Below, in pieces: positions 1-63,885 of a stretch of DNA of 64,000 bases; the first letter of the stretch is position 1, and the number at the start of each line of letters is the position of its first letter. The notes under the pieces were generated by a model. That model was not told the origin of the DNA, ran no database searches, and saw only the letters and a list, made by a program, of their open reading frames with translations. The stretch spans positions 1 through 64,000 of IMG/VR virus record IMGVR_UViG_3300042868_009074; one strand, 5' to 3'. The position numbers were made by a program, and so were the translations under genes.

Positions 1-162
1 GGAACAAATAAGGCTATTGCATTTTGTCAAGACTGCCCCGTAAAAACACCATGTGCTTTATATGCTATTGAAAATAATATTAACCATGGTGTATGGGGCG
101 GTCTATCAATTCGTGCAAGAGCTGTTATCCGAAGAAATACTAAAATTAAATCACTCCACTAG
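1..162 (+). CDS. whiB: WhiB-family transcription regulator (5' truncated by window edge)
   Basis: Frame 1 reads GTNKAIAFCQDCPVKTPCALYAIENNINHGVWGGLSIRARAVIRR...*, with CxxCPVxxxC and GVWGG WhiB hallmarks. Confidence 0.9.
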   Translation, partial: GTNKAIAFCQDCPVKTPCALYAIENNINHGVWGGLSIRARAVIRRNTKIKSLH

Positions 163-971
163 ATAAGTAACAATAGAAGTAGAATGAATCATCGAGCCAG
201 ATTTGTAACAGGCCTTGGAAATGAATCACAATCACAAATTAGTAACATCTGTTGTAAATGAATCACCACAAGCAAATAAATAACATAGAGAATAAATGAA
301 TCATTGCATTTGACAAGTAACAATTTTTTCGAATGAATCAGAACGCACAATTTGTAACGATAAATGGAAATGAATCAACAAAACAAATTAGTAACATGGG
401 TGTTGAATGAATCACTGGAAGTAACAAGTAACACGAGCCGAAAATGAATCATTTGTCTGGATTAGTAACACATTATTAGAATGAATCATTAGCTTGGATT
501 AGTAACATATTATTAGAATGAATCAATCAAAACGAATTGTAACATTGTTCGCAAATGAATCAAAGCGCCTAACTAATACCATAGGAAGAAAATGAATCAC
601 TCCCTCAGAGAATACCATTTCCTTCGAATGAATCAATGGGATCAACTAATATCAATTAAACAGAATGAATCATCCAGTCGGACTTATATCATGACCAATA
701 AATGAATCATAGTTACGGACTTCTAACATATCTAGTAAATGAATCGCCACTCTTGACCTGTAACAAATCATGCGAATGAATCATCCTAAATTATAAACTA
801 TCACCAAAATGGAATGAATCACATTGTTCGATTAGTATCACAGTTATCAAATGAATCAGATCAAAAGAACTAGTATCACTACAACCAAATGAATCATTGA
901 TTCGGATTTATATCACAATAACAAAATGAATCATACCTATCTATCAGTAACATTAGAAGCGAATGAATCAA
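163..971 (+). repeat. Periodic array of 22 units (~37 bp): AATGAATCA-N12-14-(mostly R)TA(A/T/C)CA-N9, with unique spacers
   Basis: AATGAATC(A) starts at 183,220,257,295,332,369,406,443,480,517,554,591,627,664,701,738,775,813,850,888,925,962; second motif GTAACA/GTATCA/ATATCA/ATACCA at a near-fixed offset; half unit at 163-182. Confidence 0.95.
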
Positions 972-1024
972 ATTTGCAGTCTATGCAAAGATATGAAAAC
1001 AATATTAATACAAAAGGATAAATA

Positions 1025-1462
1025 ATGCTTCTATCTATGATGCTAATTCTTGCAGTCACTTCAACTCTTTTAGAGTTAATGATTGCTGCCAGAGTCCCAG
1101 CTTGGCGCAGACTTTCTGCTAAAAGCCCACTGTTTAATTTATTAAACTCATTGTTTATCTCATATATTATGGGTATAGCATTTGGTGCAGCTGGCCTCAT
1201 TGCCTTGGGTGCAGGTGTAATATCAACTGTACTCTCAGTACCTGGATATCAATTCCTTTATTGGAATTACGATAGCCCTATGGCAAAACGCCATGGTGGA
1301 AGTATGTATCAACATACATTCAAGAAATGGTCTACAACCATTACTGACTTCTTCCACCTTATCTATAAGATTTTACGAATTCTTACAGCTCCAATATGGA
1401 TCACTCGCGCAGCGATTGTGAAATATAACGCATTCAAAAATCGTAAATCTGCAATCGCTTAA
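1025..1462 (+). CDS. Hypothetical membrane protein (about 3 TM segments)
   Basis: 145-aa ORF with hydrophobic stretches; AAAGGA upstream. Confidence 0.7.
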   Translation: MLLSMMLILAVTSTLLELMIAARVPAWRRLSAKSPLFNLLNSLFISYIMGIAFGAAGLIALGAGVISTVLSVPGYQFLYWNYDSPMAKRHGGSMYQHTFKKWSTTITDFFHLIYKILRILTAPIWITRAAIVKYNAFKNRKSAIA

Positions 1463-1484
1463 TTTATTATTAAATATATCAAGC

Positions 1485-1510
1485 AAAAAAAGGGAAGAGA
1501 CAATCTTCCC
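1485..1510 (-). terminator. Hairpin GGGAAGA-gacaa-TCTTCCC with A-tract on its 5' side (terminator-like for - strand transcripts)
   Basis: Perfect 7-bp stem 1492-1510 preceded by A7 on + strand. Confidence 0.4.
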
Positions 1511-1542
1511 GCACAATCAATTTACTCAGGAGGTAAATAACC

Positions 1543-4074
1543 ATGGCAAATCGCCGTACCAACCGCACATATACACCTTCAGTACGTCTGCGGTCCATGC
1601 CACGTGGACCACTACGTTCTGTAAATAACTACCAGTTTGGATTCTATGACATTGGCGTTCTTCGCCACTGTCTTAACACCAGTAATCCTACAGAATATCG
1701 CGTAGCTGCACTGCCAATACCACAGAATGATATTGAGCTCAATGCTGCTAAGAAAATCATCCAACACCCAGCTGTTGAGTATGCCATTGTAGACAAGAAT
1801 AAGCTTGTTCTTACTCTCATAGATGGCAGCTCAAAAGGCTGGATGGGCAACCTCACCGAACTTGGCTACACAGTCAAGGGAGGTGGCAAGGCTGCCAAGC
1901 GTATGAAGTCATTTCATCGCCCAACTCTAATCAATGCTCACTTTGATCATCTCAACGTACAAATTGTTGAACCAACAGACTATTCTACGGTCGATTGGGC
2001 CAACGATGTATCTGACGATTATTCAACTCCAGAAGTCCTTGAGCGTCTGCTCGATGGCTGCTTCGTAGTCTCCTCGAGAATTATGAAGCAAGGCATTGAA
2101 AATCTACCAGTATATGAGCCATACAATACTCACGATACCGATGAGTATTATTATGACCCAAATATCCGTCGTCAACTTCAGAACTTTCTCGCAAATTCTA
2201 AAGTCTTTAATGCTCGCATTATTTGTAATCTCGGCACCATCAAGGGCAACATGATCGTATCTGATCGTTTGCCTGAAGGTATCGATGTAATCACAGCCCG
2301 TGCAAACATTAAGACCGAGGTTATCTATAACGGAGGTTATCGTTTACTCGCTGAGCCACAAGGCCCTAAGTCACGTGTTATCACTGACGATCAGACCGTA
2401 ATTAACTTTCCAAAGTTATTTCGTAAGTCTGAGATGGAAATGTGGCTTAAAGAAGAATATGAAAAGATGTTCCAAGATGCTATCAACGGTAAGTTGTTGC
2501 AGAACTGGAAGTCTATCTATACTCGACTTTGGCGAGACTCTGACGATATCGAAGATAAGGAAGTACAGGCTCGCATGAGCTATGTAGCATATCGTTGGGT
2601 AGCAGCAGGCTTGAATATTACGGATTCTCCGTGGCTATTTGAGAACCTTGCTATTTCACACGCTATGCCATTGCAAAAGCGTATACCCATTCCTTGTTCA
2701 GTCTATGAACAAATTATTCCAGAGTCTATTGCTCGCATGGCCGGCTATGACATTGATGTTGAAACTGAAACGATTCAACGTATCAATGAAATTGGCGTAC
2801 ATGTAGTAAATGACGTAGACTGGATTGAGATGTATGAATCTCATGGTGGTCACGACGCTGACGACTTCTTTAAGCTGTTCTACCGCCACATTGAAGGCGG
2901 AACATATGACGGAGAAAACGTAGTAATTGCTATTCGTTCACCGAATGGTAAAGGCGAGTATTCCGTATTTAAACATGTTGAAGGCCAATGGTCTCCAACG
3001 TGGGTAAAATCTAACGGAGAAGAAGTTAAGTTTCCTGTAGTAAATGGACGTGGATGGTCTACCAGATTATCCACAGCTATTCGCTTCAACGAAGTATCTT
3101 ACACTGGCTTGCCCTCTACATATCTCCCCTCAGATGCTCACGTATCTGAAAGCTATGACCACGCTCAAGTTATTGCTGACCTTCAGGCTGCAATGAACGG
3201 TGGCAATGTGGGACGCTATGTCAATGCAGTTATGCTGCATTCCATGGTATTTCCTAACCATCGTACTATGCAACTTTGTTCCTTAGAAGATGCTATTGAT
3301 GGGTGTACTCAAACTGCTGACCCAGCAGATCGTGCAGCCATCGATGAAGAAGCCAAAAAGCTTGTTCATGAAGTTATCGAGTCAGGTCGTCCTATCGACC
3401 GTGCCTTCTGGATGTCTCGTAACTTTAAGAACTCATTGAAGGAAGATCAAACAGTAGAACTATATGATGGAAAGATTACGCAAATTTATGATTTGTGTGC
3501 TCATTATTTCCAAGCATATCGTACTCGTGTAACCAAGTGGTCACAGGAAAACGCACGCCCAGATGATGCCATTCATCAGTTGGGTGCTCGTTTGTACTTC
3601 CATGCACTACCACACTTACGTCGTTTTCGTATGAATATCTACAATGCTAACTCAGCAGAAGTTATTCAGAACAACTCAAACGTACAACGTGATGCATGGG
3701 AAAACCTGTATCAAGGTATCATTGATACAATCGAAAGCTTTGAGAGAGCTCAGGATAAACATGACTTTGTCTTGTCATTATACTCTGCTTCTCTCAAGGT
3801 CACAACTTCTGGTGGGAAAATTTCCGACCAGATTGTTATGAATCGTATTGTTCATCCATATCTTGAACGAGCACTTCAGCACTACGGCTTAGCTAAACGT
3901 GTGATGATTGAGCGACGTCAAGACGGAACTCTTAATATTCAGCAAACAAAAGCTGATCAATGGACTTACAATCCTGATCAAGAAGAATCGAAAACTTTCG
4001 ATGACATCTTTGAATATCAGAAGTTCCACTCTAAACACTCACCCATTATTCACACAACATCCAACCGTGTATAA
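1543..4074 (+). CDS. Putative single-chain two-barrel RNA polymerase, RdRP(RNAi)/YonO-like, with a non-canonical GGHDADD catalytic loop
   Basis: Motifs LLDGCFVVS (cf. FSDGxGxIS), FNARI..GTIKGNMIV (cf. FQIR.GG.KGVL), TDDQTVIN (cf. LNRQ.I), GGHDADDF (cf. GSDLDGD), IRSPNGKGE (cf. KNPxxHPGD), GNVGRYVNA (cf. NLGxIxNA), EDAIDG (cf. AVDFxKTG); strong SD AGGAGG. Confidence 0.65.
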   Translation: MANRRTNRTYTPSVRLRSMPRGPLRSVNNYQFGFYDIGVLRHCLNTSNPTEYRVAALPIPQNDIELNAAKKIIQHPAVEYAIVDKNKLVLTLIDGSSKGWMGNLTELGYTVKGGGKAAKRMKSFHRPTLINAHFDHLNVQIVEPTDYSTVDWANDVSDDYSTPEVLERLLDGCFVVSSRIMKQGIENLPVYEPYNTHDTDEYYYDPNIRRQLQNFLANSKVFNARIICNLGTIKGNMIVSDRLPEGIDVITARANIKTEVIYNGGYRLLAEPQGPKSRVITDDQTVINFPKLFRKSEMEMWLKEEYEKMFQDAINGKLLQNWKSIYTRLWRDSDDIEDKEVQARMSYVAYRWVAAGLNITDSPWLFENLAISHAMPLQKRIPIPCSVYEQIIPESIARMAGYDIDVETETIQRINEIGVHVVNDVDWIEMYESHGGHDADDFFKLFYRHIEGGTYDGENVVIAIRSPNGKGEYSVFKHVEGQWSPTWVKSNGEEVKFPVVNGRGWSTRLSTAIRFNEVSYTGLPSTYLPSDAHVSESYDHAQVIADLQAAMNGGNVGRYVNAVMLHSMVFPNHRTMQLCSLEDAIDGCTQTADPADRAAIDEEAKKLVHEVIESGRPIDRAFWMSRNFKNSLKEDQTVELYDGKITQIYDLCAHYFQAYRTRVTKWSQENARPDDAIHQLGARLYFHALPHLRRFRMNIYNANSAEVIQNNSNVQRDAWENLYQGIIDTIESFERAQDKHDFVLSLYSASLKVTTSGGKISDQIVMNRIVHPYLERALQHYGLAKRVMIERRQDGTLNIQQTKADQWTYNPDQEESKTFDDIFEYQKFHSKHSPIIHTTSNRV

Positions 4075-4089
4075 AATTGGCTATTCAAA

Positions 4090-4135
4090 ACTGGGGAGAC
4101 GAGCTCGTCTCGTCTTCCCAGTAGGTCTATTTTTT
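4090..4135 (+). terminator. Intrinsic terminator downstream of the polymerase gene
   Basis: ACTGGGGAGACGAG-ctcgt-CTCGTCTTCCCAGT stem, then aggtctattttttc. Confidence 0.65.
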
Positions 4136-4160
4136 CATATATAACCCAAAGTAGGTAACT

Positions 4161-4517
4161 ATGTTAACATTCAATCATTATAGAATCGATCCTAATTCAT
4201 GGATTGATGATCTTCAAGCCCAAGTACACATGAGGGAATTATTTCCTGAAATGTATATGGCTGAAGAAATTAAACCAAAAAATCTTATCAGTAAGATTTC
4301 TTATAAAGCAGGCTCTCTGACTGCTGGTACTAAAAACTTTTTTTCAAAAACGGAAACTAAAACAGCTACACTAATGGCTTATTGGGCTGCTGACTCACTA
4401 GTAGGGTTAATGCTTATGCTAACCACTACCAGCTCAATTGCTTTTGTTGTTGCTTTTGCTATGATTATTCTTCATACCTATGCTACCTTTAGCATTGTAT
4501 CAGAAGTAACTAAATAG
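4161..4517 (+). CDS. Hypothetical membrane protein
   Basis: 118-aa ORF with C-terminal hydrophobic segments; AGGT upstream. Confidence 0.7.
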   Translation: MLTFNHYRIDPNSWIDDLQAQVHMRELFPEMYMAEEIKPKNLISKISYKAGSLTAGTKNFFSKTETKTATLMAYWAADSLVGLMLMLTTTSSIAFVVAFAMIILHTYATFSIVSEVTK

Positions 4518-4528
4518 ATTTTAATTAT

Positions 4529-5143
4529 ATGCTAGAAATCCCTGATAATATTAGTAAATTTATTACTAATATGTCTTCTGAAATAGAAGCCATTAAACAC
4601 ACTTTTGTATCCACTACTGAAAAAGAGAAAGACAGCTTCAAACCATTTGCTGTATTCTTCTCTGATCCCGATACAAAATCTTTTGTTATAACATCTAGAC
4701 CTATCTACGATGCTAACGATTATTATACAGCTGTATCAGAAATGTTATTTGCATACTCTGCTAATGACTCTGAAGCTGTATTATTTGCAGTTGACTCAAA
4801 TAAAGAGATTAACGGCGTCACCCATGATTTACTTGAAGTATACATGGCTTGTAACGACTACTGCGCTATCTTTAGTTTTCCTTACTCATTAGATGATAAT
4901 CTCAAATTCCATTGGAATGAAAATTTATTTGACACCCACAGTATGGAAACACTAGAAAAAGCTTATGATACAAGTGGACAATTCCACGCAAGCTTAGAAA
5001 TATTCGAAGCTTTGTATCTCCACACTCATATGCGTATCCAGCATTTTGATATTGGAAAACTTAAATCTTTCTATGATGCTAATAATTTTAATTATGCGCA
5101 TCTACTAGAGCACAGCTCTAAACAAACTACCCTAACCTTATAA
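4529..5143 (+). CDS. Hypothetical protein
   Basis: 204-aa ORF packed in the + strand gene run. Confidence 0.75.
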   Translation: MLEIPDNISKFITNMSSEIEAIKHTFVSTTEKEKDSFKPFAVFFSDPDTKSFVITSRPIYDANDYYTAVSEMLFAYSANDSEAVLFAVDSNKEINGVTHDLLEVYMACNDYCAIFSFPYSLDDNLKFHWNENLFDTHSMETLEKAYDTSGQFHASLEIFEALYLHTHMRIQHFDIGKLKSFYDANNFNYAHLLEHSSKQTTLTL

Positions 5144-5164
5144 ACAGAAAACACACAAAGACAC

Positions 5165-5317
5165 ATGTTAACTTTAGAAAAAGAAAATGTGATTCTTTGG
5201 GAGGCAGAATCAATAATCAAGAATGTTGTTATAGTTGAAGAATCTATACTACATCAAATAGAAAAATATATGCAGGACGAAGCCTTCTATGGCGATCCTG
5301 ATTTTTCTTATTATTAA
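5165..5317 (+). CDS. Small acidic hypothetical protein (50 aa)
   Basis: Manual translation MLTLEKENVILWEAESII...YGDPDFSYY*; fills gap between genes. Confidence 0.5.
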   Translation: MLTLEKENVILWEAESIIKNVVIVEESILHQIEKYMQDEAFYGDPDFSYY

Positions 5318-5337
5318 TATTAAGGTATAATATAAAT

Positions 5338-7011
5338 ATGACAATCATATTGCGACCATATCAAGAAGAAGCTCTTAACGCTATTTTAGAAAATTGTTCT
5401 AAAGGCGTTTCTAGGCAGCTTGTTGTACTACCTACGGGCGCAGGTAAAACAGTCATATTTTCACACCTTCCAATTATTAAACCAGACGCATTACCCATGC
5501 TAGTTCTAGCTCATCGTAGCGAATTGTTGGATCAAGCCAGAAATAAAATTATGGCTTCTAATCCACATCTTAGCGTAGAAATAGAACAAGCAGAGCGTAA
5601 AGCCGGTCAGGTTGACGTAGTTGTGGCATCTGTTGCCACTCTAGGTCGAAATAATACTCCTCGTATAGAGGAATACCCCAAGGATTATTTTAAATCCATA
5701 GTTATAGATGAGGCCCATCATGCTGCTGCTCCTAGTTATCGAAGAATTATTGACTTTTTCTCTCCTGATTTTCTCTTGGGCGTTACTGCGACGCCGCAAA
5801 GATCGGATTCTACTAGGTTAATTGACGTATTCCAAGAAATCGTCTACTATAAATCTATCCAAGATCTAATTGGAGAAGGCTATCTCTGCCCACTTGTTGG
5901 CTACAGAGTTAAATCAAACATAGACATTTCTAATGTCGAAATCAGAAACGGTGAATATGCACAAGATCAACTTGAAGAAGCTATTGATACTCCTGAGCGT
6001 AACGCTCATATCGTCGCTAGCTACCTTGCTTTGGCTAGTAATGAAAAGGCCATTGTATTCGCATCCGGCGTCAAGCACGCCGAAAACTTGGCCCTATCCT
6101 TTATCCAAGCGTCGGTAACGACAGAAGTGATAGTTGGGACTACTCCTCGAGAAAAAAGAGAAGAGGTCCTTGCGAATTTTGCCAAGGGCAAGGTTTCGGT
6201 TATTGTAAATGTAGGCGTTTTAACTGAAGGGTTCGACGAACCATCAGTCCAAGCTATTATACTAGCTAAACCCACTCGTTCAACTCTATTGTATACACAA
6301 ATTGTTGGACGTGGAACTCGCCTACATGAAAGCAAAGTATCTTGCAAAATAATCGACATTGCAGACACCACAAGAGGAAAGAAGCCTATTGGCCTTCCTA
6401 CTCTGTTGGGTCTTCCCCCAGAATTCGATTTAGAAGGACAGAGTCTAACAGACGTAGCTGAAAAGTTTAAAGAACTTGAAGACTTCTGCCCCGGTGAATC
6501 AGTTCGTGTTCTTAATCCACAAGACATTGAACTAGCATATACTAGAATTAACCTCTTTATGCCACCACCACCTAACCCCACTGTGCTAGAATATTCTAAA
6601 CTTGTTTGGGCTGAAGTAGGGGAAGATGACTATTATCTTGGTGTTTCTAATGGTGAGTCTCTTAGGATACATGCTGACACACTAGGCAGGTGGAATGTTA
6701 CCCTTAAAGATTCTAATACTAAAGAAGTAAAAATTCTTGGCATTACTGAAACTATGAGAGAAGCATTCGCTCGCAGTGATCGTTGGGTTCAAAACCACAG
6801 AACTTCAGCTATGAGCCTATTGGATTCATCCGCCACTTGGCGAGCAGATGGACCAACAGATTCTCAGCAAAAACTTCTCAAAAGAATAGGTATACCCTTA
6901 ACGTCAGACATGACTAAAGGTATGGCTAGTCAAATTATCTCTCGTTACTACGAGAGTAATCCCAAGCCTAAATGGCTTCAAAATAAAATATCTTATAAAA
7001 ATAAATGGTAA
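5338..7011 (+). CDS. Superfamily 2 DEAD/DEAH-box helicase (Irc3/ResIII-like)
   Basis: LRPYQ Q-motif, PTGAGKT, DEAHH, TAT, LTEGFD, QIVGRGTR; TATAAT 6 nt before ATG. Confidence 0.92.
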   Translation: MTIILRPYQEEALNAILENCSKGVSRQLVVLPTGAGKTVIFSHLPIIKPDALPMLVLAHRSELLDQARNKIMASNPHLSVEIEQAERKAGQVDVVVASVATLGRNNTPRIEEYPKDYFKSIVIDEAHHAAAPSYRRIIDFFSPDFLLGVTATPQRSDSTRLIDVFQEIVYYKSIQDLIGEGYLCPLVGYRVKSNIDISNVEIRNGEYAQDQLEEAIDTPERNAHIVASYLALASNEKAIVFASGVKHAENLALSFIQASVTTEVIVGTTPREKREEVLANFAKGKVSVIVNVGVLTEGFDEPSVQAIILAKPTRSTLLYTQIVGRGTRLHESKVSCKIIDIADTTRGKKPIGLPTLLGLPPEFDLEGQSLTDVAEKFKELEDFCPGESVRVLNPQDIELAYTRINLFMPPPPNPTVLEYSKLVWAEVGEDDYYLGVSNGESLRIHADTLGRWNVTLKDSNTKEVKILGITETMREAFARSDRWVQNHRTSAMSLLDSSATWRADGPTDSQQKLLKRIGIPLTSDMTKGMASQIISRYYESNPKPKWLQNKISYKNKW

Positions 7012-7012
7012 T

Positions 7013-8530
7013 ATGAAAAATAAAAAAGCATCAATACTAATAACAGCTTTACTTTTGTTTTCTACACAAAGTAATCTAATCTTTAATTCTAACCCTGTTC
7101 AAGCTAAATCTATTTCTAGCGTTAAGAAACGGGCTTATAAGAATATAAAGCTTGAGAAACGTATTGTTAAGAAGAAATCAGTAACTGTTTATCGTAAATT
7201 CTTAGATACATCAGTTCCTTACATAGGCGCTGATACAGCACATGCTTCTTCTAACAAAGGCAAAGGCACTTACGTAGTATTGATTGACACTGGCGTCAAT
7301 GTCGACCACCCCATGCTCAAAGGTAGAGTAGCTCTAGAAGCTTGCTTTACCTTATTTCGTTCATGCCCTAATGGCACTAACCAACAAACTGGAACAGGAG
7401 CAGCTGCACCTGTAGACTGGCATGGCTCTCACGTATCCGGCATTATGGCAGGATCTTATCAACAATATGTAGGCGTTGCTCCAGAAGCTAAGATTATAGC
7501 TATTAATGTATTCGATAAAGATTTATCTTCATCTGAAACAGCTATAACTTTAGCCTTAAATTGGGTTAACTCTATATCTAGGGACTATAATATAGCTTCA
7601 GTTAATATGAGTCTAGGAACTAGCAGAATATATCAAGGTTATTGTGACACAGTCTCTCCTAAAATGACTACTGCTGTTAAGAATTTGTATGACAAAAATA
7701 TAGCAGTAGTAGTGGCTGCTGGAAACTCGTATGCTTTAGGCATGAGTAGCCCAGCTTGCATTAGCTATTCAGTTAGCGTAGCTTCTATGACTTATGATGG
7801 TTATGTAAATGATTTTTCTAACTTATCTAAAAATACTACATTTGCTGCTCCTGGCTATCGAATTGTATCAGCTGGAGCTGGAACCACTATGAGAGCTGCC
7901 ACAGGCACATCTATGGCTGCTCCTCACGTAGCTGGTATATTTTCTATTTATAGACAAATGTACCCAACTCATACTTTACAGCAAGCCATTAATAGAATAA
8001 AAGCTAGCTCTAAAATAGCTACTGACTATTACTCTGATATTAAGATTTCAGCTATCAACATAGCTACACTATCCAATATAGAAGATAGCCCGACTACCAC
8101 AAGTAGTACAACTACCTTACCTTGGATTAATCCCCCAACTACAACTACGCTTCCAGTAACTACTACTACTTTACCAGAAACAATTGTTACTACAACTGTT
8201 CCTTCAGTTCCAGTAGTTACCACTACAACTATTGTATCTAAATTACCTTTATTTAAGCCAACTGATCTAAAGCTCCGTGCTTTAAAAATTAATTCAACTT
8301 ACTTTTACTTATCTTACAGTGATTCTACTGTTGATAAAACATTAGTTAATGATTACACTTTATCGTGCAACGATGGCTCTAAGTTTCCAGTTTCTTTAGA
8401 ATTAAATTATAACTCTCATGTGATTAAAGTAATGTCAAACATTGCTTTTACTTCATGTTATCTTTATGCCAATTTAGAAAATGGCACAACTAGTGCTAAT
8501 AGTTCACCTGCTATCATAACTTATGGATAA
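7013..8530 (+). CDS. Secreted S8 subtilisin-like serine protease with Thr/Pro-rich linker
   Basis: Signal peptide; catalytic motifs IDTG, HGSHV, AAGN, GTSMAAPHV. Confidence 0.92.
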   Translation: MKNKKASILITALLLFSTQSNLIFNSNPVQAKSISSVKKRAYKNIKLEKRIVKKKSVTVYRKFLDTSVPYIGADTAHASSNKGKGTYVVLIDTGVNVDHPMLKGRVALEACFTLFRSCPNGTNQQTGTGAAAPVDWHGSHVSGIMAGSYQQYVGVAPEAKIIAINVFDKDLSSSETAITLALNWVNSISRDYNIASVNMSLGTSRIYQGYCDTVSPKMTTAVKNLYDKNIAVVVAAGNSYALGMSSPACISYSVSVASMTYDGYVNDFSNLSKNTTFAAPGYRIVSAGAGTTMRAATGTSMAAPHVAGIFSIYRQMYPTHTLQQAINRIKASSKIATDYYSDIKISAINIATLSNIEDSPTTTSSTTTLPWINPPTTTTLPVTTTTLPETIVTTTVPSVPVVTTTTIVSKLPLFKPTDLKLRALKINSTYFYLSYSDSTVDKTLVNDYTLSCNDGSKFPVSLELNYNSHVIKVMSNIAFTSCYLYANLENGTTSANSSPAIITYG

Positions 8531-8971: not shown

Positions 8972-9054
8972 ACCCGAGTGGCGGAATGGCAGACGCAGGG
9001 GGCTTAAACCCCCCGGAGGGCAACCTCTTACCGGTTCAAGTCCGGTCTCGGGTA
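8972..9054 (+). tRNA. tRNA-Leu(TAA)
   Basis: ACCCGAG/CTCGGGT acceptor stem, GGGGG-CT TAA AC-CCCCC anticodon arm, long variable arm, TTCAAGT T-loop; followed by CTA not CCA. Confidence 0.93.
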
Positions 9055-9079
9055 CTACAAATATAGAAAAGGAAATAAA

Positions 9080-9547
9080 ATGACCGAATTAACCCCACCA
9101 CTTCCTAATATGGATTCACCTAGATCCACAAACGGAATGAAGCAAATGGGAATCATTATGATTCTTCTTGCAGCCGTAGCTTTGCTTATTGGCATTCTCA
9201 TTGCATCACGCGATAACTCATCTGCTCCCGCAGCAACCAATGCTCCAGTCCAAACTTATGCTCCAGCTCCAGTTGTCAACAAGTATGAAGCTTATCTTGA
9301 CCATGTTTACAATAACTCTGGTCAAGCTAATACAATTACTAAAGCTTCTCTTATTGAATATGGCGATACTATTTGTTCTGCCTTAGATAATGGTAGAACA
9401 ATTCCTTATATCGTAGATTATCTTTCAAATAGTTCTTCTAGCGAAACCGATGCTGCTTTGTATGCCTCAGTAATCTTTGGAGCAATTACATATATCTGTG
9501 ATGAATACAAAGGTGATCTTAACCTTTATCTTTCTAACTCTAACTAA
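9080..9547 (+). CDS. Membrane-anchored DUF732-like protein
   Basis: N-terminal TM helix, Ala/Pro linker, YGDTICSALDNG...AITYIC two-Cys pattern typical of actinobacterial DUF732. Confidence 0.6.
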   Translation: MTELTPPLPNMDSPRSTNGMKQMGIIMILLAAVALLIGILIASRDNSSAPAATNAPVQTYAPAPVVNKYEAYLDHVYNNSGQANTITKASLIEYGDTICSALDNGRTIPYIVDYLSNSSSSETDAALYASVIFGAITYICDEYKGDLNLYLSNSN

Positions 9548-9816
9548 TGAAAAAATTCATTAGTAATTTAATTCCAAAAATCAGACCATTTACTGATGGA
9601 TTTGATTACGGTATTAAACATCACAAGACAATTGAAGATCATCACTTCTTCACTTATCCATATGGTTCAGATGAATATAAATTGTTCAAAAAACAAAATG
9701 ATCTTTATCGTAAAGGCATACGTATAGCAAGAGTATATTCTCGCTATAGAAATGAAATTCTTTTACTTATATATGTATTATCGACAGCATTGATATTTTC
9801 ACGCTGCGGTTGGTAA
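9547..9816 (+). CDS. Hypothetical protein with C-terminal TM
   Basis: 89-aa ORF coupled by TAATG. Confidence 0.65.
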   Translation: MKKFISNLIPKIRPFTDGFDYGIKHHKTIEDHHFFTYPYGSDEYKLFKKQNDLYRKGIRIARVYSRYRNEILLLIYVLSTALIFSRCGW

Positions 9817-9822
9817 ATACTT

Positions 9823-9895
9823 TCCCAGATAGCTCAGTTGGCAGAGCAGCGGACTGTTAATCCGCTTGTCGTAGGTTCGAGCCCTACTCTGGGAG
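9823..9895 (+). tRNA. tRNA-Asn(GTT)
   Basis: Canonical cloverleaf TCCCAGA/TCTGGGA, GCGGA-CT GTT AA-TCCGC. Confidence 0.95.
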
Positions 9896-9897
9896 CT

Positions 9898-10101
9898 ATG
9901 ACAAAATCTAAATATGACATGTCTCACCTACTAGGTAGACGTATAGAAATAATTACTTGCACCGATAGATACACTAATCTTGTTCCTGGCTCTCAGGGAA
10001 CAGTAACTGCGGTAGATTCCAACGGAACTGTATTCGCAAAATGGGATACTGGCTCTATTCTAGGCCTCATCCCTGGCGTTGATACCTGGAAATATCTATG
10101 A
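9898..10101 (+). CDS. DUF4314-like small protein (start reassigned to ATG 9898; upstream part of the listed ORF is the tRNA)
   Basis: GRRIE...TDRYTNLVPGSQGTVTAVDSNGTVFAKWDTGSILGLIPGVD pattern. Confidence 0.75.
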   Translation: MTKSKYDMSHLLGRRIEIITCTDRYTNLVPGSQGTVTAVDSNGTVFAKWDTGSILGLIPGVDTWKYL

Positions 10102-10390
10102 TCACTAATATAGTATTGTTATTAAATACTATATTTGCATTGTTTATTATAAGAATAATATACGATGCTATCAAACATAAAGGATAAAATGTTACATTAT
10201 ATTCAATCACTTATTACTCGTTATTCTTTTAAGCGTACTGCTAGACAACGTTATAAATCTTATAACAAAATACATCAAACTCCTTATGGAGTTCCCACTA
10301 GAAATCAAGGTTATTACGAATGAAAGATATACTAATCATATTAGTTATTGCAGGTGTTCTAACTTTTATAGTAGAAAAACTTTGGAAGCC

Positions 10391-10558
10391 ATGACATATA
10401 TTAAAATGCACGTAAAAGATAAACTGGACATTATTGCCCATGTTTTAACTCGCAACGGAGTTACTGTTTGGTATGGTATACCAGAACAAATAGTAGCTGA
10501 GCTTAAAGCTAATGGTTACAAAATTAAAAAACGTAAATCTTTTTCTAAAAATATTTAA
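10391..10558 (+). CDS. Small hypothetical protein
   Basis: Likely start at internal ATG of listed ORF 10286..10558. Confidence 0.55.
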   Translation: MTYIKMHVKDKLDIIAHVLTRNGVTVWYGIPEQIVAELKANGYKIKKRKSFSKNI

Positions 10559-10573
10559 CAACACCATACACCC

Positions 10574-10646
10574 GCGCCTTTAGCTCAGTTGGTAGAGCAG
10601 TGGACTTTTAATCCATGTGTCCCGGGTTCGACCCCCGGAGGGCGCA
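10574..10646 (+). tRNA. tRNA-Lys(TTT)
   Basis: GCGCCTT/AGGGCGC acceptor stem, GTGGA-CT TTT AA-TCCAT. Confidence 0.95.
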
Positions 10647-10648
10647 CT

Positions 10649-10927
10649 ATGACAAATGAACTAAACTCATTAAACGAACTTACAATTGGTGATATCGTAG
10701 GTGACACTAATCGTATCGTTATTGCCTGCACTAAAAAAGCAGAAAGAATTCCGGATGACTCTTATGCATATTGGGTTACCATATGCTTTAAAGAACAAGA
10801 GTATCATCCGTACGTAGTATGGAATGTTATTGCTCGTCCCGAGGGTTTTAGTTCCGTTGAAGGAGATTACTACTTTACTCTGGAAGAAGCTTTAATCCAA
10901 TACAAAAAACGTGGGGGAGAAGCTTAA
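10649..10927 (+). CDS. Hypothetical protein (start reassigned to ATG 10649)
   Basis: ATG begins 3 nt after the tRNA-Lys discriminator; upstream part of listed ORF is the tRNA. Confidence 0.7.
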   Translation: MTNELNSLNELTIGDIVGDTNRIVIACTKKAERIPDDSYAYWVTICFKEQEYHPYVVWNVIARPEGFSSVEGDYYFTLEEALIQYKKRGGEA

Positions 10928-11071
10928 TGAATAACTTAACTCTCACCAATATGATTGACCAGACTATCACCGATATCTCTGGTCAAAACTTTGTCCCCAC
11001 AGAAAAAATTATAGATCTATTATTAGATATTAGATTACACTTACTTATACAGGAAGAAGCAACACCCACTT

Positions 11072-11272
11072 ATGAAAGTTAAACTTAACGTAGAAATTCA
11101 TGCTGATATTCCAGGCGAATTTCAAGATGACGCAGATGCAGTTCAATTACTTCAAGAAGAAATAAACGAACGCTTTGAGATCAATTATGAATATGATAAA
11201 GGCGATCAACCTTCAGTTATGTTCGAATCAGCTCAAATTAAGATTTACATCCCAGGGGCAGGTAAACTATAA
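11072..11272 (+). CDS. Small acidic hypothetical protein
   Basis: 66-aa ORF in packed small-gene run. Confidence 0.6.
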   Translation: MKVKLNVEIHADIPGEFQDDADAVQLLQEEINERFEINYEYDKGDQPSVMFESAQIKIYIPGAGKL

Positions 11273-11564
11273 TGTGCTCAGGCTCAATAGAACAGCATGA
11301 TCTCGATCAATTAGAGCGGGAATTAGAAGAAAAAAAAGCTGTAGATAATTATGTTAATAACTACAGAGTATCTTTTTCTACTTTTAGCTTATTAGTTCCA
11401 TCTTTACGTGATTAATGCCATGCAGTGATGTGCAATCACTAAACATTTTGGGAGCTAACAGTCCCCATTGCTACGGGATCTTATTCGTTTACGACTAGCC
11501 CGTCCACAAAGTGGACATACCAATTCACCTTTTCCCCTAGACCAGGTGGCCACAACTGTCCTAC

Positions 11565-11638
11565 GGGCCCTTAGCTCAGTCGGTTAGAGCATCGGACTCA
11601 TAATCCGTGTGTCCTGGGTTCGAGCCCCAGAGGGCCCA
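11565..11638 (+). tRNA. tRNA with CAT anticodon (Ile2-like or elongator Met)
   Basis: GGGCCCT/AGGGCCC acceptor stem, TCGGA-CT CAT AA-TCCGT; no C1:A72 mismatch, so not initiator. Confidence 0.92.
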
Positions 11639-11782
11639 CTATGAACTTTATTATTTCATTTCTTGAACTCATTGTTATTTTATTAAATACAACAGTCTTC
11701 TTTAGATTTTTATTTATATCATTAGCAATGACTCTATACCTATACTCAGTCAAAAATATACGAACACAAAAGGAATACCCTA

Positions 11783-12097
11783 ATGACAAACACAATCCAT
11801 ACCCCTGAAGCTGCTCTTAAACATTATAAGATTCAACCAGCTTCTGATTCAGATTTTCCATACACTAAAGTTGGTTCTGAAATATACAATGCTGTTGTTA
11901 TACAGTTTATTGATATGGCTGATGATTTAGCTAAGAGTTTAAATAATAAACTTAAATTAGATTATCAAATTTCATCTCTTGATATACTTGATTCTCTAGC
12001 TACTGTTGGCCTAGAGCTTAATGTATTTGAAGAAGATCTTACCGAATACAACTGGCCATCTCTTGCCTATTTGGAAATTCTCAAAGAGAAAAAATAA
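11783..12097 (+). CDS. Hypothetical protein
   Basis: 104-aa ORF, AAGGA upstream. Confidence 0.7.
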   Translation: MTNTIHTPEAALKHYKIQPASDSDFPYTKVGSEIYNAVVIQFIDMADDLAKSLNNKLKLDYQISSLDILDSLATVGLELNVFEEDLTEYNWPSLAYLEILKEKK

Positions 12098-12360
12098 TGC
12101 CTTACATAGAGCAAGATGATCGTGTCTTTTTAGACCAAAGGGTTACATTTAACAATAATGCAATTCAAACTCCTGGCGAATTAAATTATGCTATTACTAA
12201 ACTATTAGATCACTACATTAGCTCTCATGGTTTATCCTATACCAACATCAATGAAGCCATTGGTGTGTTGGAGTGCTCTAAGATGGAATTATACCGTCGT
12301 ATAGCTGTTCCCTATGAAGATATTAAGATGCAAGAAAACGGAGACGTTTATACCGTATGA
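12097..12360 (+). CDS. DUF6899-like phage protein
   Basis: MPYI...GELNYAIT...NEAIGVLECSKMELYRR.AVPYED.K..ENGDVY pattern. Confidence 0.75.
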   Translation: MPYIEQDDRVFLDQRVTFNNNAIQTPGELNYAITKLLDHYISSHGLSYTNINEAIGVLECSKMELYRRIAVPYEDIKMQENGDVYTV

Positions 12361-12536
12361 GTAATAGAGTAAACGTTACCGCTCATGTATATAAGCCATC
12401 TACTGTCTATTATCCTGATAGTTCTAGACAATGTGCTCATGCAGATTGTACCACTCGTCTTTCGATGTATAACTCTACAGAATATTGCTGCACTCATGAA
12501 CGTCAATATCGCAATCTATATGTATATAAGGATTAA
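12357..12536 (+). CDS. Small Cys/His (zinc-finger-like) protein, 59 aa
   Basis: Manual translation includes CAHADCTTRLSMYNSTEYCCTH; ATGA-coupled. Confidence 0.6.
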   Translation: MSNRVNVTAHVYKPSTVYYPDSSRQCAHADCTTRLSMYNSTEYCCTHERQYRNLYVYKD

Positions 12537-12538
12537 TT

Positions 12539-13009
12539 ATGGGAATGGATGTTTACGGCGTTAAGCCTAAAAACGAAGCTGGAGAATACTTTCGCTCCAA
12601 TGTTTGGTTCTGGCACCCTTTATGGGATTGCCTAGAAAACCTTCATCCAACACTGTGTGAGAAGTGCGAATCTCCTCACGACAATTCAGGCTCTGGCCTT
12701 AATGCTAGAGACTCTTTAGCTTTATCTAAGCTTTTAAAAAAAGATTTAGATTCAGGTGTTATCGAAGAATATATTAAAAAATATTATGAAGCTATTGCTT
12801 TAGTTCCTCTTGATGATTGCAAGTTTTGCGACAACAAGGGTACTCGAGACTGGCCTTCTGATGATGGCACAGTCCTCACTAAGCAATGCAACGCTTGTGC
12901 AGGAACTCTCAAAGTTGCTAACTTTGTTACTCATTATCATATGGACATTGAGCTCATGAAAGAGTTTCAAATCTTTCTTGAAAACTGTGGTGGATTTACA
13001 ATTTGTTAA
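12539..13009 (+). CDS. Conserved phage protein with CxxC zinc-ribbon insert
   Basis: MGMDVYG...FRSNVWFWHPLW; CKFC and CNAC. Confidence 0.75.
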   Translation: MGMDVYGVKPKNEAGEYFRSNVWFWHPLWDCLENLHPTLCEKCESPHDNSGSGLNARDSLALSKLLKKDLDSGVIEEYIKKYYEAIALVPLDDCKFCDNKGTRDWPSDDGTVLTKQCNACAGTLKVANFVTHYHMDIELMKEFQIFLENCGGFTIC

Positions 13010-13245
13010 TCAAACCCAAGAACCCTCCTGCTTCTCCTCCTCTCCCTATCAGAGAAAGAATACTTGCCAAATACCATAATGATCTCACCATGATGGATCA
13101 CATAGATGCCTTTGTTCTATACGAAGCAGCTATGCATAAACTATATGTTAAGGTTAACCCCTGGCTTGCCAGAAATAAGTATGGCAAACCTTCGAGAACT
13201 AGAACTCGAAAAGATTTTGAGCCTAAAGAGGAAGCTTATGATTAG
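13003..13245 (+). CDS. Hypothetical protein
   Basis: 80-aa ORF, TTG start. Confidence 0.55.
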   Translation: MLIKPKNPPASPPLPIRERILAKYHNDLTMMDHIDAFVLYEAAMHKLYVKVNPWLARNKYGKPSRTRTRKDFEPKEEAYD

Positions 13246-13455
13246 CTCCCTTTAGCCAAATAGATTTATAGCAGCTAGTGAATTCAAACTTACTACGTGG
13301 TAAAACACAGAAATAAGCCGACTGAATTGCTAACTAAAAGCAATGATGCTAGTGGCCCCATATCGCCCCATTGCCTGCTATAATTAGTTTAAAGGATAAA
13401 ACATGTCTTCACCCTTATTACATTATCGAATACCCACCCTACTTCTCGTTTTCAC

Positions 13456-13529
13456 GAGCTAGTAGCTCAGTTGGTAAGAGCATCATTCTTATAAAATGAA
13501 GGTCCGGGGTTCAATCCCCCGTTAGCTCA
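13456..13529 (+). tRNA. tRNA-Ile(TAT)
   Basis: GAGCTAG/TTAGCTC acceptor stem, TCATT-CT TAT AA-AATGA, CGGGG-TTCAATC-CCCCG. Confidence 0.88.
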
Positions 13530-13554
13530 CAATTAAAATTTATTAGGAGAAATC

Positions 13555-30189: not shown

Positions 30190-30261
30190 GCCTTTATAGT
30201 TAAATGGATATAACAAGAAACTTCTAATTTCTCGTTCTAGGTTCGATTCCTAGTGGAGGCA
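30190..30261 (+). tRNA. tRNA-Arg(TCT)
   Basis: GCCTTTA/TGGAGGC acceptor stem, AGAAA-CT TCT AA-TTTCT, CTAGG-TTCGATT-CCTAG. Confidence 0.9.
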
Positions 30262-62310: not shown

Positions 62311-62631
62311 TTATTTAGCTTGTTGTGTATCTTTAATTAGCTGATATCTTTCGCCAGTTTCTCTAGAAACAAGACCGAACCCATAGGCAGCTGCTTCTTT
62401 TACAGCTTCCGACAAGGCTTCCTTATCATCTAGAGACATTTCAGAAAGGGGAAGGGAGATCGCTGCGTAAACGTCAACGTTCTCAAAATTTCCTATATTA
62501 ACCTTTCTATTAACTCCGCATATAAAAACGGGGTTCGTACTGATAGTAACCTCTCCGGCCAATGCACTAACTGCTTGGTCTAGTGGTGCGTCTGTGGATT
62601 GCTCCTGGGCTGACTTTGATATCTTAGGCAT
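62311..62631 (-). CDS. Conserved phage hypothetical protein
   Basis: GVNRKVNIGNFENVD; SD GAGGA. Confidence 0.75.
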   Translation of the reverse strand: MPKISKSAQEQSTDAPLDQAVSALAGEVTISTNPVFICGVNRKVNIGNFENVDVYAAISLPLSEMSLDDKEALSEAVKEAAAYGFGLVSRETGERYQLIKDTQQAK

Positions 62632-63433
62632 TTACTTCCTCTTTGATTCCTATTTGCTTTAGTGTTTCGAGTGTTTGTTGTTCAACGTTCATATTATCGG
62701 TATTAATTACCAATGTGGCTATCTTTTTTATATCTTCTATAGATTGTTCTGACTTGTGGGAAGCTTGCACCTCGTCCATAAGTCTACCATCTCTTTTCAT
62801 CAATCTTTCGTCTAATGTTTCTTGAGATGCGTCAAAACAGATGACTATTCCGTTTGGCTGCTTGAGGATAGCCTCTGCTTCGTTTACGAAACGAACATCG
62901 GATACCAGAATCACTACTTGTGGGACTAAGGCATCTTCGTTGTCTCTCGACTCAGCAAAAAAAGATTTAATGTTTGATTTATATATCTGATAGCTTTTTC
63001 TTATTCCCCAATTAACGAAACAATTAGGATCAAAGTCCCTACATATATCTCCTGCTTTTTGGAGGAAAGTTCTAGGCTTAATACCTTCTGGCTCTATTGG
63101 CATAGAAAATACTTGCTCTACCATTTTAGTTAGATCCTGGTAATGCGGAACATTACCTATTGGCGATCCACCAAAAATTTCGTATAGAACATCATGAATT
63201 GCATACATTCTTCTCGATGCTTCATTATTTCCCTGTATGAGCTTCTTGGCAGATGCTAATTCATAAAGAGGAATTGCATAAAATATATGATCCCACTTTA
63301 ATCCGTACTTGTTAGTCTCTAAGGAGCCTTTTGGAACTATGCTCTCAGCAACTGAAGTTTTACCGCTTCCAGCTCTACCAGCTAACCCAATTATGATTGG
63401 GTGATCTTGATGTCTTATGTATTGGTTAATCAT
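62624..63433 (-). CDS. Deoxynucleoside monophosphate kinase
   Basis: GLAGRAGSGKT, RTFLQKAG, SDVRFVNE, HKSE; TGATATAAT 7 nt before ATG. Confidence 0.85.
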   Translation of the reverse strand: MINQYIRHQDHPIIIGLAGRAGSGKTSVAESIVPKGSLETNKYGLKWDHIFYAIPLYELASAKKLIQGNNEASRRMYAIHDVLYEIFGGSPIGNVPHYQDLTKMVEQVFSMPIEPEGIKPRTFLQKAGDICRDFDPNCFVNWGIRKSYQIYKSNIKSFFAESRDNEDALVPQVVILVSDVRFVNEAEAILKQPNGIVICFDASQETLDERLMKRDGRLMDEVQASHKSEQSIEDIKKIATLVINTDNMNVEQQTLETLKQIGIKEEVNA

Positions 63434-63441
63434 AAGTAAGA

Positions 63442-63885
63442 TTATATCACATCATCTTTTGTTTTGGGCGTTTTTCTTTTTTCCAAAGTATCTAGAAATT
63501 CATTAGCAAGAGCGTCGGGTTCCCATACGAAAGATCTTTCAACTTGTACAACCTTGAAATTAAATTCATCTCTAATATCTTCCACTGTCATCAATAACGG
63601 CAATAGAGAATCGTTTCTGCATTTCCATTTTCCGTTTATCTGATTAGCTACAACAGCTGAGTCTGTATAGATTACAGGGTTTAATAGATCTCCCATAGAG
63701 CAGATTAACAGACCAGCAATTACTGCTTCATACTCAGCTTCGTTATTACTCCTTGGGCCAAGACCTCTAGCAAACTGTGCAATCTTTTTTCTATTTCTAT
63801 AGATAGTCGTTGCGCAAGCAGCTTCCCCTATCCTTTTTTGCCCCTGCCCTCTTGATGCCCCGTCACAAAAAACTTCTATAATCAC
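63442..63885 (-). CDS. rnhA: Ribonuclease HI
   Basis: FCDGASRG, NNEAEYEA, YTDSAVV, N/E..D.LAN. Confidence 0.92.
   Translation of the reverse strand: MIIEVFCDGASRGQGQKRIGEAACATTIYRNRKKIAQFARGLGPRSNNEAEYEAVIAGLLICSMGDLLNPVIYTDSAVVANQINGKWKCRNDSLLPLLMTVEDIRDEFNFKVVQVERSFVWEPDALANEFLDTLEKRKTPKTKDDVI

Follow-up and report, generated by a model that had tools for sequence, protein, structure and literature searches.

A 22-unit array of a jumbo phage that very probably belongs to the dual-repeat TIGR systems

TIGR-Tas systems, in which TIGR stands for tandem interspaced guide RNA, were described in 2025 (Faure et al., Science; PMC12045711). In their dual-repeat arrays, two short repeats of 8-12 nt, termed edge and loop, alternate, and each unit has two spacers of about 9 nt that are unique within the array; the initial (box D) and final (box C) nucleotides are the same in the two kinds of repeat, since edge and loop alike are bound by a symmetric Tas dimer (PMC12045711). 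The published dual-repeat unit is a "uniform 36 nt", and the literature total stands at 6,685 TIGR arrays. ParB-like genes are already described as part of TIGR/TasA loci. Residues Y289 and H296 of SpTasH are reported to cut the pre-tigRNA, and the published strand cuts fall at spacer position 5, giving a break with 8-nt 3' overhangs. One TasA is a reversible RNA-guided repressor (bioRxiv 10.64898/2026.09.09.750476). The validated array of Salicola phage CGphi29 (SpTIGR), which was read here as a positive control, has edge repeat AAGCGAGCCA, loop repeat AAGACAACCA and 8+8-nt spacers, starts with a truncated first edge repeat, and has a terminator at its end.

TIGR arrays resemble CRISPR arrays in that tandem repeats with unique spacers are cut into guide RNAs, and in that spacer content differs between relatives. 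The two differ in that TIGR has two short repeats whereas CRISPR has one of 25-36 nt, in that a TIGR guide comprises two 8-nt spacers pairing with opposite DNA strands, and in that TIGR has no cas genes, PAM or known adaptation machinery. Two guide segments and box C/D-type anchors are also found in box C/D snoRNAs and sRNAs (Nop5/Nop56/58) and in the IS110 bridge RNA, where a dimeric Nop-domain protein likewise binds the guide RNA. Unlike box C/D RNAs, TIGR has neither a K-turn/L7Ae partner nor fibrillarin, targets DNA rather than RNA, and carries its guides in tandem rather than as single genes; unlike the IS110 recombinases, TasA has no DEDD recombinase domain.

The DNA analysed here, hereafter the window, comprises positions 1-64,000 of the 267,766-bp IMG/VR contig IMGVR_UViG_3300042868_009074 (window base 1 is contig base 1). 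It has 37% GC and phage-like genes. An independently fetched locus (L032, positions 1-8286 of the same contig) has coordinates identical to those of the window. The region at the window's start is, with high confidence, a dual-repeat TIGR array of a jumbo phage.

The motif AATGAATC(A/G) is present in 22 copies on the + strand between positions 183 and 970, one every 36-38 bp, comprising 21 exact copies of AATGAATCA and one AATGAATCG. Intervals between copies are 37 bp in seventeen of 21 cases, 38 bp in three and 36 bp in one, so the copy number and spacing given in the initial annotation hold. Only five exact copies, both strands summed, are found in the remaining 63 kb. Tandem Repeats Finder returned fragments only, because most of each unit is unconserved.

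Each unit opens with an edge repeat of 10 nt (R-AATGAATCA), after which come spacer A, a loop repeat of 11 nt (R-ATTAGTAACA) and spacer B. An alignment of 106 distinct 37-nt units, drawn from the window array and related arrays, presents two conserved blocks, namely a purine followed by AATGAATCA, and R-A-t-t-a-G-T-A-a-C-A. The information content of the two 8-nt stretches between the blocks is near 0, and 16 of the 37 unit positions are free. In the window array, spacer A has 7-9 nt and spacer B 8-9 nt, typically 8 (+/-1) each, rather than the 12-14 and 9 nt first assigned to the variable segments. The second motif noticed at the outset, GTAACA, is real, yet it is merely the 3' part of the 11-nt block; its drift from AACA to ACCA/ATCA in later units was confirmed. 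Edge and loop repeats alternate through all 22 units, and no two units have the same spacer pair (22/22 distinct). Both repeats have R-A at the start and C-A at the end, 18/19 nt apart, so the early suggestion of a dimer of an 18.5-bp sub-unit was essentially right; such pseudo-symmetry is expected if the RNA is bound by a symmetric Tas dimer (PMC12045711).

The array extends over 145-970 on the + strand, with edge repeats of 9-10 nt and loop repeats of 11 nt. Its units start at 145, 183, 220, 257, 295, 332, 369, 406, 443, 480 and 517 (units 1-11) and at 554, 591, 627, 664, 701, 738, 775, 813, 850, 888 and 925 (units 12-22). The first edge repeat (145-153, ATTAAATCA) is 5'-truncated and degenerate, lies in register with the array, and falls inside the last codons of a whiB-like gene, which places the array's beginning upstream of the 163-971 first proposed as its extent. 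After it come the first spacer A at 154-161 and, at 162-172, the first loop repeat, such that the whiB stop codon (160-162) falls at the boundary between these two. The terminal edge repeat (962-970) is full length and not 3'-truncated. The 22 complete units are thus bounded by 23 edge repeats, 22 of which are full length. A weak hairpin, TTTGCA-N5-TGCAAA, lies just past the array (~973-989), and no intrinsic terminator was found on the + strand in window positions 1-1600.

The array is non-coding and is not CRISPR, as the initial annotation had held: a 37-bp period cannot hold a frame and the ORFs crossing the array are of chance size only, while the repeats are two, of 10-11 nt, with 8-nt spacers, and no cas domain is present among the flanking genes scanned. 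A search of window positions 1-3000 against Rfam at a permissive threshold gave no match, and Rfam seems to contain no tigRNA family. A blastn search of positions 1-4100 against 50,697 phage records gave no match either.

In direct comparison with the published definition and with the validated CGphi29 array, the window array presents the same alternation of ~10-nt edge and loop repeats with two 8-nt spacers per unit, the same shared box D-like first and box C-like (CA) last nucleotides, a 5'-truncated first edge repeat, and a phage genome setting; in relatives, tas also precedes the array on the same strand. It fits the structural description in every respect except two. The unit has 37 nt instead of the reported 36, because the loop repeat has 11 nt, and the terminal truncated edge repeat and terminator, which are typical, are missing. 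Other differences concern size and setting: 22 units are present, compared with the usual 5-15; the first unit overlaps whiB; the closest relative's array lies five genes from tasA; and the window contig has no tas gene. The array represents an evident further case of a system already known, rather than an element of a new kind. Neither the motif nor metagenome 3300042868 was found in the available part of the supplement to PMC12045711.

Related arrays were sought in viral contigs by requiring two motif copies 27-29 nt apart, which yielded at least 118 loci. The matches listed include simple repeats with a period of 9, 12 or 18, which are unrelated, and about 29 loci with true 36-37-bp arrays having different spacers in every unit. 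The motif pair at a period of about 37 bp, which the initial annotation had proposed to seek in related phages, was thus found, with differing spacers and with gene neighbours that could be compared. The loop repeat varies by lineage (GATTAGTAACA, ATAGTATCA, GATAGAAACA, AAGAAACCCA, GAGAGAACCA). A truncated start repeat (TTAAATCA/TTAATCA) is also present in L120, L122, L021, L099, L059, L077 and L083, and several related arrays, e.g., those of L046, L077 and L083, end in a truncated repeat and a terminator.

In at least 21 of the loci found by motif, a gene for a protein of 266-397 aa precedes the array in the same orientation and ends 25-650 bp before it; L011 is an exception, with a distance of 1983 bp. 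Loci were also fetched in the reverse direction, seeded by Tas protein similarity, as a test free of motif bias, and a 34-39-bp periodic array was observed beside tas in 83 of these 88 loci. Read on the tas strand, the consensus of the Tas-linked arrays is GA-N6-(C)CA / N8 / GA-N6-(C)CA / N8, and the GA...(C)CA pattern is seen in about 50 such arrays and in SpTIGR. In a tree of 85 Tas proteins from the fetched loci, a sample biased by the motif-based search, the 37-nt period is common to the whole Tas clade of the window's relatives. The AATGAATCA edge repeat is found in this window-type TasA clade (support 100/99), whose members all have the 37-nt period, and also in at least six further Tas clades, one TasH (L059) among them, with different loop repeats. 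In L117, a 340-aa ParB-like protein (Pfam DUF6551, 2.6e-14) is encoded at 10863-11885, about 1.1 kb downstream of the array, which recalls the published tasParB association.

The upstream protein was characterized by means of a profile of 17 sequences (alignment A1), which matched TasH structures with E=3e-43, TIGR-TasR (TaTasR, 9mty) with 1.6e-29 and the IS621 recombinase with 4.6e-6. In Pfam, the family presents a weak Transposase_20 match only, and PHROGs labels it "transposase". The protein of L011/L120 has 284 aa, and its AlphaFold model (pLDDT 86.5) is all-helical with a disordered N-terminus and without a nuclease domain. When this model was compared with the PDB using Foldseek, the top 11 matches were TasH/TasR cryo-EM structures, with probability 1.00 and TM 0.5-0.7; IS110-family recombinases came next, IS621 and ISCro4 scoring lower. 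Its Y265 and H272 align with Y289 and H296 of SpTasH, and this processing dyad is conserved in the TasA of the relatives. Given the profile and fold matches, the Y/H dyad and the missing nuclease, the protein upstream of the related arrays is, on sequence and modelled structure, identified as TasA. The relatives' effector is thus a nuclease-free TasA, unlike the TasH of SpTIGR. The companion of such arrays is a Tas (Nop-domain) protein, and not WhiB or the 843-aa protein encoded downstream, both of which had been put forward as partners.

Within the 64-kb window, a profile search found no Tas-like ORF (E>1), and the window's contig is not among the matches of three protein-seeded scans of the viral collection. 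The contig starts partway through whiB and 145 nt ahead of the array. The nearest relatives are L120 and L122. In the 202.7-kb contig of L120, whiB is complete (81 aa; the window's whiB is 95% identical to it at the DNA level), and tasA comes first, 1.98 kb upstream, with four small ORFs, whiB, the array and orf846 after it in that order. In the 210.8-kb contig of L122, the order is tasA, array, orf145 and orf843, with tasA 76 bp upstream; its orf145 and orf843 have 73% DNA identity to the window. The simplest reading, based on the gene order of these relatives, is that the window phage probably carries tasA just beyond the contig end.

A different account of the locus is that of an orphan or decaying TIGR array, whose tasA was lost or was never in cis, leaving a relic or an array served in trans by the Tas protein of another element. 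No tas was detected in the window or on the contig, and six loci with the same edge repeat AATGAATCA and 36-nt arrays with loop ATAGTATCA gave no Tas match in their flanks: L046 (6792-7464), L077 (6029-6393), L083 (2974-3190), L096 (6676-6932; same 247-kb contig as L083), L088 (4842-6414) and L118 (2773-3061, - strand). These contigs are mostly of jumbo size (86-299 kb). Profile A1 had no match at E<=1e-3 in the ~3-7 kb flanking these six arrays, and BLASTP at 1e-5 found no conserved neighbouring protein; they may be served in trans, be orphans, or have a Tas too divergent to detect. A relative with a degenerate Tas-like ORF and no array (L209) also points towards decay. For the window, however, the contig starts so close to the array that a tasA within 2 kb upstream, as in both nearest relatives, would lie outside it, and the exact AATGAATCA in 21 of 22 full edge repeats, together with the kept spacer lengths, argues for ongoing selection. 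We therefore consider an orphan array improbable.

It is considerably less probable still that the array acts at the DNA level, i.e., as iterons, a partition centromere, a packaging platform or a regulator sponge, being bound as double-stranded DNA at its TGAATCA and TTAGTAA cores. These cores (TGA-A-TCA and TTA-G-TAA) are two 7-bp pseudo-palindromes at fixed spacing, there are replication-type genes nearby (a helicase at 5338-7011), and the L117 array has the ParB-like DUF6551 gene downstream of it. Iteron and centromere arrays (F sopC with 43-bp repeats, lambda ori, P1 incA/incC) likewise have direct repeats, fixed spacing and dyad-symmetric cores. In those arrays, though, conservation covers the whole unit or there is a single recurring motif, and their action is at the DNA level, whereas the window array has two alternating motifs, free spacers and a link to an RNA-binding Tas. 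The linkage of the same architecture to Tas in the protein-seeded loci always involves the tas strand, strand polarity and a 5'-truncated first repeat suit a transcript rather than a symmetric DNA site, and the ParB-like/TasA association already belongs to what is described for TIGR loci. Cumulative GC skew, which had been suggested as a check for an origin, does not change direction anywhere in the window, although the window's edge is where the array lies. Nothing was found that points to the iteron, packaging or sponge roles listed in the initial annotation; the evidence backs the last of its four proposed roles, a precursor of guide-type short RNAs. Least credible of all is a stack of tandem promoters, or an RNA repeat of 36 nt acting against an endoribonuclease in the manner of type III (ToxI-type) antitoxins. 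The unit of ~37 bp does equal the span from -35 to +1, and ToxI-type antitoxins are tandem 36-nt repeats. Yet a sigma-70 scan gave six sites where 8.7 were expected, the motif spacing misfits -35/-10 geometry (16-18 bp, in every unit), and no stand-alone unit is reused upstream of any gene in the 64 kb, so the tandem promoters proposed earlier found no support. As for ToxI, antitoxin repeats are conserved over their full length, while here 16 of 37 positions are unconstrained and the RNA is unstructured, and no ToxN-like gene is adjacent. A reading as dispersed promoters was rejected on the same scan and on the absence of units outside the array in the 64 kb.

Under the preferred reading, that of a TIGR array, the transcription, processing and targets of the window array may be proposed by analogy with the family. 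The array would be transcribed rightward, in the same direction as whiB and the relatives' upstream tasA. [quoted passage not shown] The resulting TasA2-tigRNA particle would read a 16-bp duplex, one strand pairing with spacer A and the neighbouring stretch of the opposite strand pairing with spacer B; written as a single strand, the target site would then be the sequence of spacer A joined to spacer B in reverse complement. From the published cut position and overhangs, we infer that each spacer pairs with the 3' half of its strand. Since a nuclease domain is missing from TasA, the likely outcome is binding and bending, by which genes of the host, of rival elements or of the phage itself would be repressed or blocked, rather than cleavage. 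The array RNA folds worse than shuffled controls (z=+2.35), which fits the published description of dual-repeat pre-tigRNA; a reading as structured RNA was rejected on this value.

Neither the window nor 1.7 Mb of viral DNA from related loci gave a target of the tandem spacers at up to one mismatch, in either geometry, which leaves the early suggestion of spacer matches to phage DNA without a hit there. Matches at 2-3 mismatches equal those of partner-shuffled controls, and the spacers of 299 foreign units gave a single AT-rich match with one mismatch in the window, which is within chance. Given that about 280 chance matches are expected for a single 16-mer in 596 Gb, 16-nt sites are too short for matches in large collections to be informative, a limit also noted in the field.

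The content of the array can be compared with that of the closest relative, L011/L120 (145-970 in the window; 8838-9320 in L120). Nine of the 22 window units recur there with at most two mismatches, in partly changed order. Since whiB is 95% identical while only these units are shared, array content turns over faster than the flanking genes. Near-duplicate pairs of units (at most four differences in 16 spacer nt) account for 5 of 1271 pairs within arrays, compared with 2 of 21,204 between unrelated arrays, an enrichment of about 40-fold. They are seen in the window, where the units at 443 and 480 (443-516), recognized from the start as near-duplicates, have four differences, and in the arrays of L021, L088, L049, L114 and L116; certain pairs share spacer A alone or spacer B alone. 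These observations suggest unit duplication and recombination inside repeats as routes of array change, and lend some support to the growth by local duplication proposed in the initial annotation, whose interpretation is partly supported overall.

The locus adds a 22-guide array in a ~268-kb phage with whiB, a clade with 37-nt units, and related phages sharing 9 of 22 units, along with near-duplicates and single-spacer sharing within arrays. This constitutes comparative material on array turnover and leaves knowledge of the mechanism unchanged; the natural targets, phage role and spacer gain of TIGR-Tas are questions of the field (PMC12045711; bioRxiv 10.64898/2026.09.09.750476). It also indicates that reading the sequence by itself can find TIGR arrays that tas-centred pipelines miss when the effector is off the contig. 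A more speculative and rather unlikely proposition is that, in large phages, a TIGR array need not stay coupled to its effector gene. It is based on the array being up to five genes from tasA with its first unit embedded in whiB, and on the other jumbo-size arrays with the same edge repeat that have neither tas nor a conserved neighbour within several kb. If true, there would be guide arrays served in trans and missed by tas-centred catalogues, and the window array could constitute a 22-guide TasA repressor programme against host or rival genes.

A further relative, L209 (IMGVR_UViG_3300013005_000001), has homologues of a 195-aa gene and of orf843 and no periodic array. Its Tas-like ORF is very divergent or degenerate and has a long branch in the tree, and L209 may have lost the system.

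The array occupies the stretch from the cut whiB to a 145-aa ORF. The 3' part of the whiB-like gene (1-162, +; Pfam Whib E=6e-12; stop TAG 160-162), cut by the contig start, is context outside the system. The 145-aa ORF (1025-1462, +) is syntenic context with no sign of belonging to the system; its homologues lie near the array in L021, L117, L001, L120 and L122, in varying gene order. The 843-aa ORF (1543-4074, +) is a conserved neighbour that adjoins the array in all members of the phage clade, with 54-64% identity in five loci and an invariant HGG-x-D-x-DD stretch, and is regarded as context only. It was also considered as a polymerase-like array partner on the basis of its HGGMDEDD motif; it has no Pfam, PHROG or PDB match, and an AlphaFold model from five sequences was unusable (pLDDT 35). 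Further along the window are the SF2 helicase mentioned above, a subtilase (7013-8530), a dNMP kinase-like gene (62624-63433) and an RNase H (63442-63885). The window also contains eight tRNA genes (Leu, Asn, Lys, Met, Ile, Arg, Gly and Ser), five of them clustered at 9-13.5 kb (8972-13530) and the others at 30190, 39440 and 58616.
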